Source: Trichoplax adhaerens
Taxonomy: Eukaryota > Animalia > Placozoa
Assembly (NCBI RefSeq): GCF_000150275.1
Contig: NW_002060950.1
Location: 1,972,106-2,036,105, forward strand
Length of the DNA stretch: 64,000 bases
Direction: 5' to 3'
Made by a program: the position numbers and the translations under genes. The notes beneath the pieces are model-generated. The model made no database searches. It saw nothing but the letters and a program-made list of their open reading frames with translations, and was not told the origin of the DNA. Shown here one piece after another: positions 3,566 to 42,643 of the stretch; the stretch's first letter is position 1, and every line of letters begins with the position of its first letter.

Positions 3566-5009
3566 GTATAATACATAATCCGTAAAACACTATAAGTATG
3601 GCGGCATTTTGTTATTGTAAGTTGCGTTGCCTTGCTTAATCAATAACCCAAACTACAGCATTAGGGTAATAGGAATGTTATGGAAACAATGTTTGATAAC
3701 ATTTCAATGATTTTAATATCATCTTTTATGCAACGAGGAACACAATTAACGTCATAAGTACAACAACAATCAGCTGCATATTTTATTTTTAACTAAATGA
3801 AAGCTGCGTGTAATTGCCAATATGGATTACAGGTATGCATATTCATCTGCAACCGATTTCATCATTAATTAATCACAGTTATTATGCAATAGCCGTTGCT
3901 ATTTTGATAATATCACCTATTTAAACAATTCTAAGAAATTGTGGTTAATACTAATTTATTGGTTAACAAGCAATTCTATACCGTAATGTAAGATAATAAT
4001 TGTAAAACCAGGAATCCTTACGCATCAGACAGTAATTAAAATATCCTTAAGCAATTAAATATTATATGCGATTAGAAACAACTCGATTTTCATAGGATAC
4101 CAATGCCTTTGTTAAACCGTTGCTGGCTTTGATATAATACCAAATTTTATGAAACAGCTCATAGTTTAATTTAAAGCTACTCATTGATGCTAAAGTTCGG
4201 AAAGTAGTTTGAGCGTGTTCACTGGCAATAGGAATTTTAGTAGTGCAGTTGGCCAGTAACTGAAATCGGAAATTATTTTAGTATAAGATCTATATCAAAT
4301 CTATACAGCATCAAATGGACGTTCTTTAAGTAACAAATAATATTTGCTAGACGGAAGTTTGATTATAAATTCTTCCGATCCGAATTTTTAACCTAATACT
4401 CCGACATACAATCGAATGATGTTTCCATCTTAAACTTATAAAAATAAAGTATTGTACTATTTTTATTTAGCTGAAGATTATTTAATTTTTAAATTCGTTC
4501 CTTTTCCTGACTATTTAGGCTAATCAAGTTGTCTACGATGGAATACTTAAGGTGTAAAATTCATTCAAAAGATTTGATGATGGTTGTTGGGCTTACTAAT
4601 AAGAATTATCGCCGATGACATTATACTTACGCTTAATCCGGTACCTTTTGAGAAAAGGTAAGAAGATTGGGGAACAAATTGATTTACTTCCAAATGATAC
4701 TATAAGACATTGGAAAAATAGATCGTTATTCAAAGTATTGCAGTATAAGGATGGTCGCTTTTCTGGTAATTATTCGATACAATTCTTGTCGGATCTTACG
4801 TAGTTTTAATAGTTAATCTATGATATGGTCATTTTTCCATTAAATATTACGCAAGTTACAATTAAGTAAAATATAAGGAAATTAAAGTGGCAAATTGACA
4901 ATAGCTCTGTCACGGAATCGTGATTAAATTATAATTTAAGTCAAATTTGAAATAAAACTCTGATTACAAGTTCGAGAGCAGACAAAAGTTGTTGATACAG
5001 AGAGAAACT

Positions 5010-6050
5010 GATCATAGTAACAATCTTGTTTTAGTCAATTTTGTAATAAAAATCATCCTTACATGCTCGACCAGGAAATTAATTAGTTGACCAGTATTTT
5101 CGATTACTTTTTGCAATTGACATACATTATTTTCGTATGAGTTAACCACGGATAAGACTGATCGTAACTTTCCAAGCTGTTCGAAAACGATTGTTAGCAA
5201 AGGATAGCCCTAGATTTTTTTACACGTTTTGCATAAAGGAAGCCTTTTTTAATTGAAGAAAGCTTTTATATAATAACTAACTGTATAAATTGTATTATTC
5301 TATTAAAAAAGCGAAAGCATCTGTGTAAATTGCAAATACCGATTAGATGAATGATAAGGGAAAAGAGAAGAATTATTAGGCAGATTTGATAAACGAGCAC
5401 TAATGGGATTTAAGTATTGTGAATTACATTCGTTGTTGCCTAACCTTTTCTAGCTTTTCAGGAATATTAAGAAGCAACGAATTACAACTGAAATCCATCA
5501 CGTTATTGACTTTGTAAATTCTTCGATGGCATTGAACGGCAAGTTCGATTTCTTTACCAAGCTCACTAGTCAATTTGGTAACATAAACGGCAAATGATGC
5601 CGATTCACGAGCTTGCGATCTCGATGTAATAGTAAATCCATGCGCAAGGCAACATAAAGTGCACAAGGTAAAAATTGCTTCTGTAACGAGAATAGAATTC
5701 ATGAATAAATAATATGAAAAGGTGTTGACTTGAGTTTTACGTACCTAAGCATAATATTATCAATGCTTAGACAAGATTGCGATTTTTATTCTAAATAATA
5801 CGTTTATACAATGTGCCCTATCAATTCCTATATTGATCTAATTTAGCAGCTCATAGAAATGGTTACTAGCTCTTAAAGATCATGAAAGATAGAATGCAAT
5901 ATGATATAAGGTGGCGTCCTAGCACAATGGCCCGACTTGTATATCCAGTACTTGTTATCAAATGATTACAAGCTACTGTAACTTCTTTTTCAATAAAATC
6001 AGTCTTTATTAGCTTCTGTACTATATTTACGAGTTCAAAAGCATATTGAG
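5010..6050 (+). pseudogene. Possible distant decayed paralogue of the cytokine-like gene (relic C)
   Basis: Hydrophobic NLVLVNFVIKIILTC, then DRNFPSCSKTIVS. After the acceptor at ~5461: QRITTEIHHVIDF...NGKFDFFTKLTSQ vs LRLKKLVKNLLEF..NGKFQQFIMQ. Helix-D-like LVYPVLVIK*LQATV at ~5935-5980. Weak, by-eye alignment. Confidence 0.3.
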
Positions 6051-15875: not shown

Positions 15876-16895
15876 TATCTCAAAATTAATAAAATAGATT
15901 GGGAAGTAGGTAATCACATGATAAATTCTAACTTAGCTTGATGATAGTATGGTTAATGAAAATCCTTGAAAAGAGGAAGTTCCTTACAACGAAGCATCAT
16001 TCAACGCTTGAATAAACTTCATGATTATTCCACCTGCATGCGGTATCAATTATGTATTAGATTGTCATTATTCCTAATTAATTTTGTCATTTTAATTTCT
16101 GAATATCTATTTTAAAGTTTTAATCCTTTTCCTGGCAACTGAAGTACTTAATAATTTTCTATTGCATCCTTATTATTATTTCTTTTCTATTATCAATCAA
16201 ATTGGTAGATAGCTACCAATTTTATTGAAAAGTGCGTGAGTGTATTATTACTTAAGTGATGATAGGCGTGGAGAATCTATCTGTAGTCAAAGTGACCATT
16301 CGCCTCTGGAATAAAGACTTAGAGTGAATCTTCCATGTGATTTGTGCAAACGTATCAAATTTATATTATAATGCTAATATTCTTAGTGTTATAGCAATCA
16401 TTTGCAACAGTATCATATTGCTGGTGAAAATTTTTTGATACATTTTTTAATGAGATTATATGAATACTTGAGTTAGGAAATAATTTTGAAATAGTTGATA
16501 GCTATTAACTCACATGTAAAACGCCAATTGATCTTAACTAAGATATAAATTTTAGAGAAAACTATTCTAAATTTAATTGAATTATTATTTGCAATGAATG
16601 AAAATTTAAACCATATCCTATAGTCCTTCCTTTACTGGAATAAATTACAATTTTAATTGCATATGCTTTATTATTTAAACTGAATAGATTAATTGGTACA
16701 CCATATGTTATTCGAATGCTACTACAAAAGCAAGTAAAGAATGCATAAAATATTTTCCGGTCAGTCGTTATGTCTGTAATTAAAGTTAATTGCATTTAGT
16801 ACTAATAATTTTATCCTAATGTTCTTTAAAAAATTCACTCCACACACAGACAATTAGCAAATCAAAATAAAAGTTCAAGGAGGGCAAAATATTTA

Positions 16896-16935
16896 CCAAT
16901 TAGCTAGATAATCGGCCAATAAATTTCTATATAAA
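16896..16935 (+). promoter_or_regulatory. Putative core promoter (CCAAT boxes + TATA box) of the cytokine-like gene
   Basis: CCAAT at 16896-16900 and 16916-16920; TATATAAA at 16928-16935, about 80 nt upstream of the ATG at 17014. The AT-rich background lowers specificity. Confidence 0.45.
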
Positions 16936-17013
16936 GGTTAACGAGGTGAGCTACCAAATCATTGTGACTTAGCCGTACTTTTGTTAACTTGAACTCAACA
17001 CTATTGGAATAAA

Positions 17014-18900
17014 ATGCCAGCCAAAGGTTTGTTTGTACTTTATCATTTGATACATTAACACGTCGTAAATTGTAAGTCGCCAAAGACCAGCTCAGCGTTA
17101 CTACTGCTTATTCGCCCTACGTTAAATTTCAAATTTCAGATCATGCTTAGTATTTTATTTTTCGATCTTAAGAGTTAGACATTTAATCATTGAATAGTCA
17201 AAAGCAGTTTTTGTTGAATATCTAATCTATAAAATAATCTCTTATAGCTAAAACTATCTTAATAATCTGGAATGCAATACTCGTTTGCTTTTGTTGGTAT
17301 TGCGGTGCTAAACCTGTTCAACCATCAACGAAAGATGGATCTGTCCTCGACGTCCTCGATATCGTCAATGGCCAACTACGTGACGTCCAAATTATTGTTG
17401 GCAAGTACTTAGCTGAATATCGCAACAGCTTCCCCAAAGACAACGATAACGAATTTGAGGTTACATGTTGCCAAAAAATTACAATCATATCGCATGATGC
17501 GCTGGTGAGTATCCTAAATCCAACTAAATATTCATTTTACTTTATTTTATCTTCGTTTTCATTTAAACAGCACTATCATGATCGGTTCTTCTGATAGATC
17601 ATGATTATTTAGTGGTAATCAATTAAATCTTATAAAATACTATCAATACATTCCAATGATACTTTTAATTGTGAATACACACTCTCTCTCTTACTAATTA
17701 TCATACTATACACGTGCAACCAATTTGTATTTTGGTACTGAATTTTACAATTACCAAATATTGCTCTTTAGTTTTGTCAGATATGATCCGTTAATTATGC
17801 CAAAAACGATGCTATAATCTCTGACAATATTGGCAATAAATTGTGCTGTACTATACATTATTATTTTTTCACCGTTGTTTCCTCTTTGTCTTAGTACAAC
17901 TACGTAAAATAACCACATAAAATACCATTATTATTTATTGTAAGAGTTTTCGCTAAGGCTATTTGACGACGCCTAATTCCAGAAATTATTGTAATAATTT
18001 TGTATCTTTGCTCTCTTTAATCTACAGTCTTCACCATGTCTACGATTGAAAAAGCTCGTCAAGAATTTATTAGAATTTTCACGCCCTAATGGAAAATTTC
18101 AGCAGTTTATTATGCAAGGCAAAGTGCAGAATAATACCAAATTATTGTTAAAAATTCAATATTTACTTGACAAGACGAAAATTCTATATGAGAATTTCCT
18201 CTACCTCGTAAGTCAGCTAAAATTTAAAAATAAACATTTATAACAGATTACTAGTGCATGATTGCAATACTACAGCTTACGAAGTTATACCGTAGATTTA
18301 AAAGTATAGTATCATATTAACTTGTAGGATTTGCTATTTCAAAATACTTAGCGTAACTTAACTAAAGACTAACTATTATAATAAAATTTTGCTTATACTT
18401 TACTTAGTTTAGCTTTGATCGGCGTTCAAATGTGAATAAAATATTTAGAAAGCTAGAAGTAAGTAAAACCGGTATCGTTCATTTTTGCTAATTAATCAAT
18501 GATTGTGTTAAGGAAAGAATTCATTGTCGTCTCTCAGTAAAAACCATAAATGTATTCATTTTAATTGAATCAATCAATATGGTTAAATATCAATGAAAAA
18601 ATGCCGCTATTTAAATACTAGCATTTATTAGTATGTCAAGAAAAAAATAAATCAATAACGTTATCGTTCTATATTTTTTCATCATAGACTACACAGCCAT
18701 CACTATCATCAAATAGTAATAATCAACCTAAAGACATAAATATAACGACAGCGCCTTCGATCGAAAATGATCAAAATTTTATGGATGAATGGTATTATAA
18801 TCTCGTCGATTATGATAGCAACTTGAACGCCATTTTTATAACATTGTTATTACTACGGGAAAGTGTCGTCACGGAAGGACGATTAGATTGTCGTCGATAG
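17014..18900 (+). CDS. Secreted 220-aa protein, predicted long-chain four-helix-bundle cytokine-like
   Basis: Exons 17014-17026, 17248-17504, 18028-18207 and 18688-18900 join in frame through GT-AG introns (phases 1,0,0). Protein: MPAKAKTILIIWNAILVCFCWYCGA|KPVQPSTKDGSVLDVLDIVNGQLRDVQIIVGKYLAEYRNSFPKDNDNEFEVTCCQKITIISHDALSSPCLRLKKLVKNLLEFSRPNGKFQQFIMQGKVQNNTKLLLKIQYLLDKTKILYENFLYLTTQPSLSSNSNNQPKDINITTAPSIENDQNFMDEWYYNLVDYDSNLNAIFITLLLLRESVVTEGRLDCRR. The gene model is well supported; the fold assignment is inference. Confidence 0.85.
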
Positions 18901-20399
18901 AAATTCATAAATAAATTCTTATTATTTATTTGCTATTTCTCTCTATCATTGTATAATAACCCATATTTCTAAAGATAATGTCAATACCGGCATATCCGTT
19001 TTATATCTAGATTACTATCTTTCAAACTATAAGCATGGATTACTTATGATAACGTATCGTCATTAAACTATGACTCTAAAAACTGTTAATAACAATATTC
19101 TTTGACAATAATGAATCGTTTATAACTTTTTGTAATATATAAAATAGATCTATATAGCTGGTATACACTCTTAGCAGTAATATTGTCAATAGTACCAGTT
19201 AACAACAAAAATAAGGAAATTTTGGTATATTATGATGTTGTCGTTCGAAGTTAACGTAAAATGATAGTAGATTGTGATGCAAGTAGAATTTGATACTAAT
19301 AATAGCTGTTTCCGTATGATCACTGTTTTACTTCAATTTATGGCTACGTTTAAAGTGTTAAATAACATCACATTATATTATCATTACATTGGAGTCTATC
19401 GTTGGCAGAAATTTTAGTAATGGCTTCCGACGATTTTATTACAGATTAGGATGATGTTTAGTCTTAGGAAAGTTGTTTCTTATCTTGATCATATAGCGAT
19501 ACACAAGAACAATTATCAATTAAGTAATTAATTTATTAATATTCTTGCGAAATAACGGTCATCAAAATACGATCCGTAGCCATACCTTTGTTTATGATGT
19601 AATTAATTATCTGTTAATTTTATAATAGAATTAATATAAAAATAGATAATTGCTCTTTACATCATACTGATATATTATGCTATCTTGGCAAGAATCTGAT
19701 GTTGAGCAATAATATGCCATTATATTGAAATCATACTACAGGTTGATCATTATTTTCTACTTAACAATTTCAACTTGTTAACTTGTTAAGGGAAATAATA
19801 CGGTCATAATCGGTATTGCTATACCTTATGACTAGCTCACAATTAAGATATGAAAGTTAACAGCTAAGCAATATCATTTAAATTTCTACATTCGTATTGA
19901 AGAAAAATAATCATAACTGGAATAAATATTCATATATGATGTCATTTTAAATCTTATTGTGAACAGACTATGAGTTATTATTATGCAGTAACATCGTTTG
20001 ACGAAGTGTGATCGTCTTGGTTTACTTTCTGGTTTGACGTAATATTTCTCTAGAAACGTAATAAATAAACGACATTTTCTTTATGTACAGGTAGAATCAC
20101 GTCAGAGCTTTTGAAGTAGTAGACAAATAGTTATAGAAACAAATAAAATGTCAACTAATGCGAAAAATTAAAATCTTATGCCATGAATAAGTTAATCTTA
20201 ATTTTTAGCAATAGCATCATCAATATCATTTCTGTAATGATTAATAAAAAGTATAAAAATACGATAGGAAACGATGTTCTATAAACGTAGCGAAAACTTT
20301 TAAAATCAGCAAAAGCTAGCAATGAAGTGATTTCCTTCCACAAAATATGTCAAATTGAATGTAAGGTATTGTATTCACATCGATATTAAGAGCATTAAC

Positions 20400-34147: not shown

Positions 34148-37100
34148 ATGATAAAATCTATCTTGTGGAAAGAATGTCTGACTTGTACCTTCCTGCATTT
34201 TTTAATCACCCTCCTAGCTTGCTTAACATTAACGGCAAGATGTGATAACACCATCGTGGCTAATATTGATGGGGAAACTATCAAAGGCAAAATAACGTTC
34301 AAACAATCAGCACCTTCATCATCCGTTAATATAAAAGTGTCATTAAATGGCCTAAACTCTACCGCAAGATGGGGAATAACATCAGGTTTCATCGACAACA
34401 ATGGAGATAATGATTGCAGTTCCTCTAACATTGGCTCTATTTATAATCCTCATCGGGTTCCATTAGGAGTTACTTGTGATATGCAAAATCAGCTCACAAC
34501 ATGTCCAGTCGGTAATTTAACTAGTAGATATGGTTTTATTCCTACTCATGGCCAAATAACATTTCAAGATACTTTACTTAATCTCAGCGGTAATTTATCA
34601 ATTGCTGGGCGAACTATGATCATTCAGGATAATAGTAAATGGCTCTGTGTTCGTCTGCTTGGGTCCGGTGTAGCAATTGTGATGTCTTCTAGAATGCATG
34701 GTCAGATTCAGGGTCGAGTTTTGTTTCACCAAGTTCAACCCATAACATCATCAAGTACATCTATAACTACATTATATTTGAGTTTAGCGGCACTGCATTC
34801 TTATGAAAATAACAGAGTTTACCAATGGCAAATTCGAGATACCTGTAATTCATCTGCTGCATATGCGCCTAACGGAGAACTTACTAGCAAACATGCCTAT
34901 CTAAGCGTTGATCCAACATTAACAAAGAATAAACTATTGATAAATGATCGCGATCTTCCATTAAATGGCAGTCGCTCCATTGAAGGAAAATATGTTGTTT
35001 TGTTTACTAATGACAGTAGCAAAACCATAAAGTCGTGTGGAATAGTTAAACGAATTCATCGGAAGATTCTCGAAGCCACTGTCAATAGTCAAGGAGTTAC
35101 AGGATCGATCAGACTTGAACAAAACTCTGAACTCGATCCTGTTCGCCTTCATGTAATGTTAAATAACTTGAATGGTCTAGCAACAACGTATGGTATTTAT
35201 CAGTATCCAGTAGGACTAAAACTTTCACCTACTGATAATCCTTGCCGAAGACTTGGCCAAATATATAATCCTACTAATATGAATATAAATCAACATTCCG
35301 CAATGAATCTATTACCTATTGGAGATTTGTCAGGAAAATTTGGAAATTTAACCAATCAATTAGGAGTTAATAGCAGTTTCTTGCATTACCAACTACAATT
35401 ATTTGGCGAATTTAGTGTTGTTGGACGCTCTATTGCCATCCGCTCTTCATCTGCAAATAGAGATTGGATCTGTTCAACTTTAAATTACCCTTCTCTACCA
35501 TTGATAAAAGCACAAGTTCGTCTGGTATTTCCTGTTGTAGGCAATATCATCTTTACACAGTATCGAGATGATCCGTACGCAGATACTAGTATATATATCA
35601 CCATTTCTCAATCTGGGCGAGATTCTCCTTCCGTAAATCATAACTGGCACGTTCATACTCAAGGTTATTTGACGGATACAATGTCAACAAGTGGTCGTTG
35701 TACTAGTGCCGCAGGTCATTATAACCCCTCCAATGTTAACATTTCGGCTAGCGACTATAAAGCTCGCTGTAAAGCAAATCCTATATTGTGTGAGCTAGGA
35801 GATTTATCTACACGCCAAGGTGGAATTAGTATAGGTGATCAAGTCAATCGTTACTATTATAATGATATTAATACACCATTAAGTGGTAAAAATTCTATTC
35901 TTGGTCGATCTGTGGTAGTTCATGCGAAGCAATATGGTGCTGGCCGGATTTCGTGCGGTAAAATAATGGAAATTGCAGTAGGTCACGCCACGGCTGACTT
36001 AAATCAATATGGAAAAATAAGTTTTCAGCAAGTTGATCCTGCTGCTATTACTATAGTGAACCTAAATTTAAAGAATTTAAACTCAGAAGTTAGCGCTAGC
36101 TATATTGGTAGCACTCCAAAATGTGATCCAATCGACATTTTTAACCCATTCCAGAAAGTATCTTCAGGTATCAAATCGTACAAATAAAAATATTTAACAG
36201 TGTTTAGAATCAACATTAAATTACTAGAATCATTCTTTAGGAAAGACTGATTTTATCATATGAATATGACAACTTTTTAAATACGTCCATCAATGTCATA
36301 TGGTTCTAAATAAATTAGAACATTCTATTGTTAATTTACTGTTTTTTCTATTTAACATAATTTATTTACAACGCTAAATTAAGGAACAATATAAAGTTTA
36401 ATACTTAATAATATCATGGGTATAGTCTATGCAAGCGTTAGTCGATACGATTTGCTTATACTGTATACTACCGCAATAATTCCGACATATCTACGGTATT
36501 ATATTGCACTAACATTACTTAGGACTGCCATTTAAGCTGTAAGGTATAGTATATGTGGACTTATAGTTTATTAAATAATATAACATTGCCTGCATTTAGT
36601 ATTATATAGTTAGAGTTTTCATCCCGTCTTTGTTTTATTATCCTTTAAGCCTAACTATTGTGTTTTGATCTTTCCCTTATGTAGCTATCGAAGGTAGCAC
36701 AAATGATCAGTATCCTGTCGGCAATCTTACTGGTAAACTTGGCATAAAATTAAATCATGCTTTGGTATTAATAGAAAAATTTCAAGATACCAATCTACCA
36801 TTGTTTGGTACGGAAAGTGTTATTGGAAGATCAGTGGCACTGATTGGTATAGCAAATGATAAGATAAAACAGTGTGCGACTTTACAACGTACACAGATAC
36901 CGGGTTCGTTTGTCGTAAGTGGAATCGCAATATTCAAGGGCCCGGCCGCGATTGGTAGTATTACTTTGGTAATATTGCAAATACTGTACAGCAACATTAC
37001 AGAATCAAACTACTTAATTTAAAATAAACTCTACTCATATGCCGTTTTATGACTTGGCTTTCACTATTAAGTTTCTATTAAGATTACCGAATATCATAAA

Positions 37101-41296: not shown

Positions 41297-42643
41297 ATGA
41301 AGTTTCAAGGTTCGGCGTATTTGTCAATACCAGGTAACGGAAAGCCACGATTTCAAGCTCCTTGCCTACACTATGAAAGTAATTATAATGTTCGGAAAGC
41401 CTATAAAAAATTATTAGATCAGTACGGCTTGGATCATATCAGTACTGTTCATGGCCGCAAAAGTAATAACGCAAGAAAAGAGTCTATTGCCATTATAGGA
41501 GGAGGTTGGTATGGTTGTCATTTAGCAAGGGCACTATCCATTAGAGGGTATCCAGTCCAAATTTTCGAAGCAAATGATGATCTTTTTCAGGGAGCCTCTG
41601 CACTGAATACTTTTCGATTACATAGAGGATTTCATTATCCTAGAAGTGTTACAACAAGACTGCAGTGCAAAGAGGGATTTGAAAAATTCGTTGAAGATTA
41701 TCCTGCTCTATCTAAAATGCAATCCTCTGCAATCTATGCTATCTCAAAAGATTTACCAACTAGTAATAAAGGTAAATCAGTCAAAGAAGGAATCAGATTC
41801 AACAAGTACAAAGAGATAATGGATGAGAGCGGCTTAAATTATAAAGATATCGAAGCGACTGATCTTATTAAGTATCAAAATATAGAAGGAATGGTAGATA
41901 CCAACGAAAGAACCATTTATGTAGATCTTCCTCGTGAGTATTTTAGATCAGTATTAACCGGCTTGGGTGTGGATATTTCTTACAATAGCAGAGTAATTTG
42001 TTTACAGAATAAAGACGATGGCAAGGTCGATGTATCGTATTATACTTTTGACAAGAAATCGATTGCTTCAGTTAAGAATCGTACAGAATCCTTTGATTAT
42101 GTCATCAATTGCACCTATAATACTTATAAGCCAATCAAGGATTTATCAGCAACGTATGAGAGTTGTATACAGTTGATTTATTCCTCGAAAGTAAAAAATG
42201 AGAGACCCTTTAGTTTTTCAATATTTGATGGTGAATTCCCATCCATTGATCCATTTGAATTTTATTTTAGACCACATGGGTCTTCTAGCAAGCAATTCTA
42301 TATTATGTCGCATGTTAAATTGACACCAATAAAAAAATATTCAACTTACTCTGAAGCTAGGCAGCATCAGTCCAGTCTATCAAAAGAAGAGATAGTTGGT
42401 CTTAAGGATGATTTTGAAAAAGCATTTCAGGATTATTTTCCTGACTTTTATCGGTACTTTTCTTACGAAGGTTATGCTTTATCGATAAAATCAAAGCCCA
42501 ACATACAGAAGAAATCAGAGGCAGACTTTCGTGGTGTTATAACTCGGCAAGAAGGTAATATTATACATGTTTTTTCTGGTAAAATTGATACCATATTTCA
42601 AGCCAAATGCGATGTTTTTAACATTTTAAAACGTAATCAATAA
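41297..42643 (+). CDS. Intronless FAD-dependent oxidoreductase (DAO-like superfamily), 448 aa
   Basis: Single ORF with Rossmann motif IAIIGGGWYGCHLA...VQIFE, then GASALNTFRLHRGFHYPRS, FDYVINCTY and C-terminal HVFSGKIDT. Confidence 0.9.
   Translation: MKFQGSAYLSIPGNGKPRFQAPCLHYESNYNVRKAYKKLLDQYGLDHISTVHGRKSNNARKESIAIIGGGWYGCHLARALSIRGYPVQIFEANDDLFQGASALNTFRLHRGFHYPRSVTTRLQCKEGFEKFVEDYPALSKMQSSAIYAISKDLPTSNKGKSVKEGIRFNKYKEIMDESGLNYKDIEATDLIKYQNIEGMVDTNERTIYVDLPREYFRSVLTGLGVDISYNSRVICLQNKDDGKVDVSYYTFDKKSIASVKNRTESFDYVINCTYNTYKPIKDLSATYESCIQLIYSSKVKNERPFSFSIFDGEFPSIDPFEFYFRPHGSSSKQFYIMSHVKLTPIKKYSTYSEARQHQSSLSKEEIVGLKDDFEKAFQDYFPDFYRYFSYEGYALSIKSKPNIQKKSEADFRGVITRQEGNIIHVFSGKIDTIFQAKCDVFNILKRNQ

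Follow-up and report, generated by a model that had tools for sequence, protein, structure and literature searches.

Structure, transcription and conservation of the gene

We analyzed a stretch of 64,000 nucleotides (nt) of Trichoplax adhaerens DNA (RefSeq assembly GCF_000150275.1, contig NW_002060950.1, positions 1,972,106 to 2,036,105 of the forward strand; called the window below and numbered from its first letter), and within it the gene TRIADDRAFT_58653, the product of which is probably a helical cytokine-like ligand. An original prediction, made from the letters of the window, had proposed at this place a four-exon gene for a helical cytokine-like ligand in a non-bilaterian genome, and Trichoplax, a placozoan, is indeed a non-bilaterian. 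The transcript evidence came from contigs of four public runs that were mapped to 16800-19300. Three of these runs, each from a different study, are of the RNA type: X7 is recorded as an RNA library, and X8 and X9 match transcriptome assemblies in size. The parts of the gene are as follows.

16896-16935, plus strand: core promoter, with CCAAT boxes at 16896-16900 and 16916-16920 and a TATA box, TATATAAA, at 16928-16935
16961-17013, plus strand: 5' untranslated region (UTR); contigs of X7 and X8 start at 16961 and 16971
17014-17026, plus strand: coding exon 1, the ATG and 10 further nt, followed by a GT donor in phase 1
17248-17504, plus strand: coding exon 2, predicted to encode the remainder of the signal peptide, helix A (residues 37-64) and an AB loop that carries Cys78-Cys79
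18028-18207, plus strand: coding exon 3, with Cys94, helix B (residues 93-123, kinked at Pro110-Gly112), the short BC link and helix C (residues 127-150), as predicted
18408-18458, plus strand: coding exon 4, 51 nt or 17 amino acids, phase 0; as predicted, it completes helix C and opens the CD loop with a short helix (residues 156-168)
18688-18900, plus strand: coding exon 5, with the S/T/N/P-rich CD loop and its N185 sequon, predicted helix D (residues 192-230), Cys235 and the stop codon TAG
18901-18985, plus strand: 3' UTR, as far as reached by a contig of X9, with AATAAA at 18910-18915

TRIADDRAFT_58653 is a real, transcribed gene with five coding exons. Four spliced junctions with GT..AG ends were found in the RNA-type contigs of the three studies: 17026/17248, 17504/18028 and 18207/18408, each carried by contigs of X7 and X8, and 18458/18688, carried by contigs of X8 and X9. 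The contig starts lie 26-36 nt 3' of the TATA box. The coding exons measure 13, 257, 180, 51 and 213 nt, which gives intron phases 1,0,0,0 and a product of 237 amino acids. The four exons that had been proposed (17014-17026, 17248-17504, 18028-18207 and 18688-18900) are all open and flanked by AG and GT, and two of the three proposed junctions, 17026/17248 and 17504/18028, occur in the contigs. The model lacked the 51-nt exon: its third junction, 18207/18688, has to be replaced by 18207/18408 and 18458/18688, its phases 1,0,0 have to be extended by one phase-0 intron, and its claim of a 220-residue protein was wrong. The direct joint 18207/18688 was absent from the contigs of the mapped runs, which cannot rule out a rare exon-skipping isoform.

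The 237-residue product is identical to XP_002114623.1 / EDV22757.1, which is listed at NCBI as 'uncharacterized protein TRIADDRAFT_58653 [Trichoplax adhaerens]'. When exon 2 was used as a phmmer query against 1.84 billion representative proteins, it retrieved a 237-residue protein (P0001) that is 100% identical and contains the residues of the 51-nt exon. Since the product equals a public protein, the gene was missed, as had been claimed, only by the prokaryote-style list of open reading frames (ORFs), and not by the public annotation. The entry UniRef100_B3S3A8 was named 'Interleukin-6' automatically, and the basis of this name in the database pipeline could not be inspected. The gene model and the automatic label are therefore already public. 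Our literature search found no paper that describes TRIADDRAFT_58653 or contains its identifiers, and none that pairs Trichoplax with helical cytokines or an IL-6-like gene; the gene is also unmentioned in the Trichoplax cell-atlas papers and supplements that we examined.

The protein of Trichoplax sp. H2 (P0005) is identical save for one substitution, I186T. The H1 and H2 strains differ at 1 of 714 exon bases and at 6 of 1173 intron bases, and are too close to inform on selection. Beyond the Trichoplax strains, the only relative was an ORF (P0002) on a placozoan-like, 3.7-kb contig of a metagenome assembly (locus L003). This contig stops before the last two exons, and the orthologs were compared exon by exon over exons 1-3 and the upstream region. 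In L003, exon 1 (at 2271-2283) is again 13 nt long and ends at the conserved donor, exons 2 and 3 have retained their splice sites on both sides, and the proteins are 66% identical over exon 2 and 79% over exon 3. The ratio of nonsynonymous to synonymous substitution rates (dN/dS), computed on the mature part of exons 2-3, was about 0.14 with a dS of about 0.8, and the protein is thus under purifying selection. The promoter and 5' UTR (16850-17040, compared with 2110-2300 of L003) are 89% identical, as against 57% for intron 2. Such a difference between promoter and introns, at a distance where synonymous sites are near saturation, suggests tight transcriptional control. Together, the low dN/dS and the conserved promoter and 5' UTR indicate that the protein and its regulation are both constrained.

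No second copy of exons 2, 3 or 5 was found in the 105.6-Mb genome, so that the gene is single-copy and shows no resemblance in sequence to the rest of this genome. A relaxed tblastn search of the window with every exon of TRIADDRAFT_58653 and of a second candidate gene (described below) yielded no decayed or significant second match. Outside placozoans, no homolog was found among the 1.84 billion representatives or by a word-indexed search. Two further proteins, P0003 and P0004, were considered as homologs and rejected, their match being confined to the hydrophobic signal region.

Anatomy of the predicted secreted protein

On inspection, the N-terminus has the signal-peptide-like character claimed by the original prediction, with a basic n-region, a hydrophobic core of 17 residues (residues 7-23) and a Cys-Gly-Ala / Lys-Pro site, the small residues of which at -3 and -1 are kept in the L003 ortholog. 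Cleavage is predicted after Ala25 and would leave a single mature chain of about 212 amino acids, close to the roughly 160-210 amino acids of long-chain cytokines. We considered the possibility that residues 7-23 form an uncleaved signal anchor, which would make the product a type II membrane protein or a helical resident of the endoplasmic reticulum or Golgi rather than a diffusible one. With its 17 or so residues, the core is among the longer ones for a cleaved signal peptide, and this length would fit such an anchor, as would the basic n-region before it. Yet the ortholog has kept the small residues at -3 and -1 while the hydrophobic core has diverged, as is typical of cleaved signal peptides, and we regard the anchor as highly improbable.

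Secondary structure was assigned by DSSP on two AlphaFold2 (AF2) runs, both of very low confidence: one with four alignment rows (mean predicted local distance difference test, pLDDT, 43.1; predicted template modeling score, pTM, 0.33) and one on the single sequence (pLDDT 35.3; pTM 0.21). The helices common to both runs span residues 37-64, 93-108, 113-123, 127-150, 156-168 and 192-230, and a further helix may lie in the AB loop at residues 71-86. Taking the segments 93-108 and 113-123 as a single helix B, kinked at Pro110-Gly112, there are four main helices, joined by connections of about 28 (AB), 3 (BC) and about 41 (CD) residues. At the level of secondary structure, the chain therefore has the arrangement of a long-chain cytokine, in which the AB and CD connections are long and the BC connection is short; this arrangement is the one needed for an up-up-down-down bundle, a topology that the chain may adopt. 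All the loop features that had been read from the sequence are present, namely a long AB loop with the pair Cys78-Cys79, a short BC link and a long CD loop rich in S, T, N and P. So are the four cysteines of the mature chain (Cys78, 79, 94 and 235), one of them near the C-terminus. Two N-glycosylation sequons, N125 in the BC link and N185 in the CD loop, complete the picture of what is predicted to be an all-alpha secreted glycoprotein.

The chain also contains four dibasic sites (KK98, RR155, RK164 and RR236). These raise the possibility of a prohormone that would be cut into small peptides, with the helices serving as a precursor scaffold, and placozoan signaling reportedly relies largely on processed peptides (PMC10580291, bioRxiv 10.1101/360925). 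Several features of the protein make this very unlikely. Peptide units are not repeated in it, Gly-dibasic motifs for amidation are lacking, and one of the dibasic sites, KK98, falls within the conserved helix B. Moreover, it is helices A, B and C in their full length that are conserved, not short peptide stretches. Furthermore, the four cysteines and the sequons suggest a folded domain.

Cytokine-like features and candidate pathway components

An indication of a family came from a search of the ESM Atlas, which compares proteins by language-model features. The top match was a cluster of LIF proteins (score 0.94), with 216 of 256 features shared. The other nearest large clusters were cardiotrophin-2-like, GH-like, IL-6-like (including a mollusc cluster), IL-11 and G-CSF-like, and the best 10 matches that carried a family assignment all belonged to one clan, the four-helical cytokines. 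According to the calibration of the search tool itself, 9 of 10 same-family matches share at least 170 features, as do 1-2 of 10 chance or distant ones. As a specificity control, the search was repeated with the mature part of the protein, restricted to named clusters and with ten cytokine Pfam families excluded. Three matches were listed, all of them clusters of arthropod Unpaired (0.84 with 173 shared features, 0.80 and 0.77), and no unrelated family was among them. This feature evidence is independent of the 'Interleukin-6' name in UniRef.

The structure of the gene points in the same direction. The genes for IL-6, G-CSF, GH and EPO have five coding exons, of which the first is very short, and intron phases 1,0,0,0. 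TRIADDRAFT_58653 shares this plan, with its five coding exons, first exon of 13 nt and identical phases.

We searched the whole genome in six frames with Pfam profiles for components that could receive a signal of this type, an approach that is weak for domains split by introns. Exons for the STAT_alpha coiled coil were found at two loci (L005, 1501-1725, minus strand, 38.9 bits; L006, 1501-1716, minus strand, 30.4 bits), in agreement with STATdb, which also records STAT in Trichoplax (PMC4144846). Three single FN3 exons resembled tissue factor and the class-II cytokine receptors (L007, 1501-1770, minus strand; L008, 1501-1764, plus strand; L009, 1501-1704, minus strand). L007 scored 27.6 bits against Tissue_fac (tissue factor D1), for which the cut-off is 27, and the other two were weaker; in two of the three, Tissue_fac outscored the generic fn3 profile, and faint matches to CRLF2-like_D2 were seen as well. 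From these profile matches, the three exons may be taken as candidate parts of paired-FN3 receptors. As to the orphan cytokine receptor CRLF3, the literature is contradictory: it is reported as absent from placozoans in one paper (PMC6797617) and as present in two others (PMC12026705, PMC12409108).

The original prediction had called for a search for gp130/Domeless-like receptors, JAK and STAT. STAT was thus found, whereas the JAK-specific profiles FERM_F1 and Jak1_Phl and the class-I receptor domains IL6Ra-bind and EpoR_lig-bind were not detected. A cognate pair of JAK and class-I receptor, the latter having a cytokine-binding module with WSXWS, was accordingly not among the matches of the six-frame search. 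Because this search is weak on intron-split domains, we describe JAK and the receptor as 'not detected' rather than as 'absent'.

Interpretation, neighboring genes and significance

The explanation that we favor, with a probability of roughly 0.55, is that TRIADDRAFT_58653 encodes a secreted ligand resembling the class-I helical cytokines, which would act on a receptor with paired FN3 domains and through STAT or another route, without a canonical JAK. The 237-residue precursor would lose its signal peptide, and the mature chain would be secreted as an all-alpha glycoprotein that serves as a signal between cells. Its helices A to D, with long loops after A and after C and a short link between B and C, would pack as a four-helix bundle, with disulfides predicted to join Cys78/79 of the AB loop to Cys94 and to the C-terminal Cys235. 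Faces of this bundle would bind the cell-surface receptor, and the latter would signal to STAT or into another route via a non-canonical kinase, which is proposed because no JAK was detected.

The idea of a helical cytokine-like ligand, as first put forward from the sequence, is thus favored by the Atlas features, the automatic UniRef name, the gene plan and the order of helices and loops; the constraint on protein and promoter, the sequons and cysteines, the two STAT loci and the FN3 exons also speak for it. It is weakened by the need to correct the exon model and by a series of results that weigh against a cytokine, among them the failure to detect JAK and class-I receptor domains. Pfam-A profiles, searched by hmmscan with the whole protein (P0001) and with each exon, gave no family at E ≤ 10, and there was in particular no match to IL6, LIF_OSM, CNTF, IL11, GCSF, Hormone_1, EPO_TPO, Leptin or Unpaired (PF15972). 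PDB sequences gave no match either, with the single protein (phmmer) or with a profile (hmmsearch). Four amphipathic segments had been claimed; four main helices are predicted, but their hydrophobic moments do not differ significantly from those of shuffled sequences (z 0.5-1.6). In the LIF/OSM/CT-1 subgroup, helix D begins with a site-III motif, FXXK (PMC9601804); the Trichoplax protein has none in residues 190-210 at the head of this helix, where an aromatic cluster (W202, Y203, Y204) is found instead. The structural neighbors of the Atlas's own model (pTM 0.63), with template modeling (TM) scores of at most 0.45, include no cytokine, the best by target length being the four-helix bundle of PsbQ (TM 0.44). 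Foldseek against the PDB and VIA-align wide, applied to the better of the low-confidence AF2 models, returned only coiled-coil, BAR and designed-bundle matches, which we counted as uninformative rather than as speaking against the fold. Finally, similarity in a language model is a lead and not a proof of homology.

The main rival explanation is that the product is a secreted helical protein specific to placozoans and unrelated to cytokines in evolution and function, for instance a structural, antimicrobial or membrane-active protein or a carrier. In that case the Atlas similarity would reflect generic traits, i.e., a signal peptide, a length of about 220 amino acids, long helices and long loops of low complexity. 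The lack of homologs beyond placozoans, the absence of Pfam and PDB matches, the very low confidence of the AF2 models, the unrelated helical proteins among the structural neighbors and the undetected canonical receptor and JAK all fit this explanation, and Trichoplax makes other orphan helical secretory proteins (PMC12013895). Yet, with the vertebrate families removed from the Atlas search, the matches listed were all to Unpaired and none was to a generic family of helical secreted proteins. Exon number, phases and the tiny first exon fit the gene plan of cytokines, and a separate database pipeline, albeit on a basis that we could not inspect, arrived at the name Interleukin-6. We consider an unrelated protein less likely than a cytokine-like ligand, though it is the alternative to be taken most seriously.

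We conclude that TRIADDRAFT_58653 is a probable, not a proven, member of the helical cytokine family, since no family profile matched, the agreement with the cytokine plan of helices is at the level of secondary structure, and the canonical receptor and JAK were not detected. A more far-reaching proposal is that it is a true four-helix cytokine of the IL-6/Unpaired class in a non-bilaterian, that this class predates both the Bilateria and the receptor-JAK module, and that the receptor is tissue-factor/class-II-like or CRLF3-like and leads to STAT or another pathway. We put this forward tentatively, as somewhat less than an even chance.

Three other candidate genes of the window deserve mention. 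The first is a candidate for a second secreted helical protein, predicted at 4062-5702 on the minus strand, with about 189 amino acids and four cysteines in the mature part. Its putative exons, in phase 0 and with GT-AG introns, are the following.

5702-5445, minus strand: 86 amino acids, with a predicted signal peptide, a helix and a Cys-containing loop
5176-5063, minus strand: 38 amino acids
4259-4062, minus strand: 65 amino acids and the stop codon

When its exons were searched one by one, neither a Pfam match nor a paralog in the genome turned up, and the candidate resembled neither TRIADDRAFT_58653 nor any database protein in the searchable length range. The ORF list also contains two long intronless ORFs on the plus strand. 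One, at 34148-36187, would encode a secreted protein of 679 amino acids, the motifs of which resemble, by eye, several repeats of the Cu/Zn-superoxide-dismutase type; the other, at 41297-42643, would encode 448 amino acids.

Among known ligands, those of the IL-6/LIF/G-CSF/CNTF family share with the Trichoplax protein a secreted chain of about 210 amino acids, the order of helices and loops, AB-loop and C-terminal cysteines and the gene plan, and they form the nearest clusters by Atlas features. On the other hand, the Trichoplax protein has no detectable similarity to them in sequence or profile and no FXXK, its structural likeness to them is at the level of secondary structure, and its genome gave no match to JAK-specific domains or to a class-I cytokine-binding module. 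The comparison with Unpaired (Upd1-3, PF15972) is of interest because this is an invertebrate family of fast-evolving, secreted, glycosylated helical ligands without sequence similarity to vertebrate cytokines, and the only one among the matches listed once the vertebrate families were excluded. In contrast to the Trichoplax protein, with its 237 residues and lack of a Pfam match, Unpaired clusters have about 400-585 amino acids, and Unpaired acts through Domeless and the JAK Hopscotch, neither kind of which was detected in Trichoplax.

According to surveys, ligands of the IL-6 family occur in vertebrates alone (PMC13203501, PMC8226699, PMC9601804), with none in non-bilaterians (PMC13203501, PMC8226699), and outside vertebrates it is Unpaired in insects that they cite. 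Where the helical cytokines came from, and which native ligands bind ancient orphan receptors such as CRLF3, are regarded as open questions (PMC12026705, PMC8063046). If our interpretation is correct, the helical-cytokine class of ligands would be older than the split between placozoans and bilaterians, and TRIADDRAFT_58653 offers a concrete, clonable candidate with which to fish for a receptor in a very simple animal.
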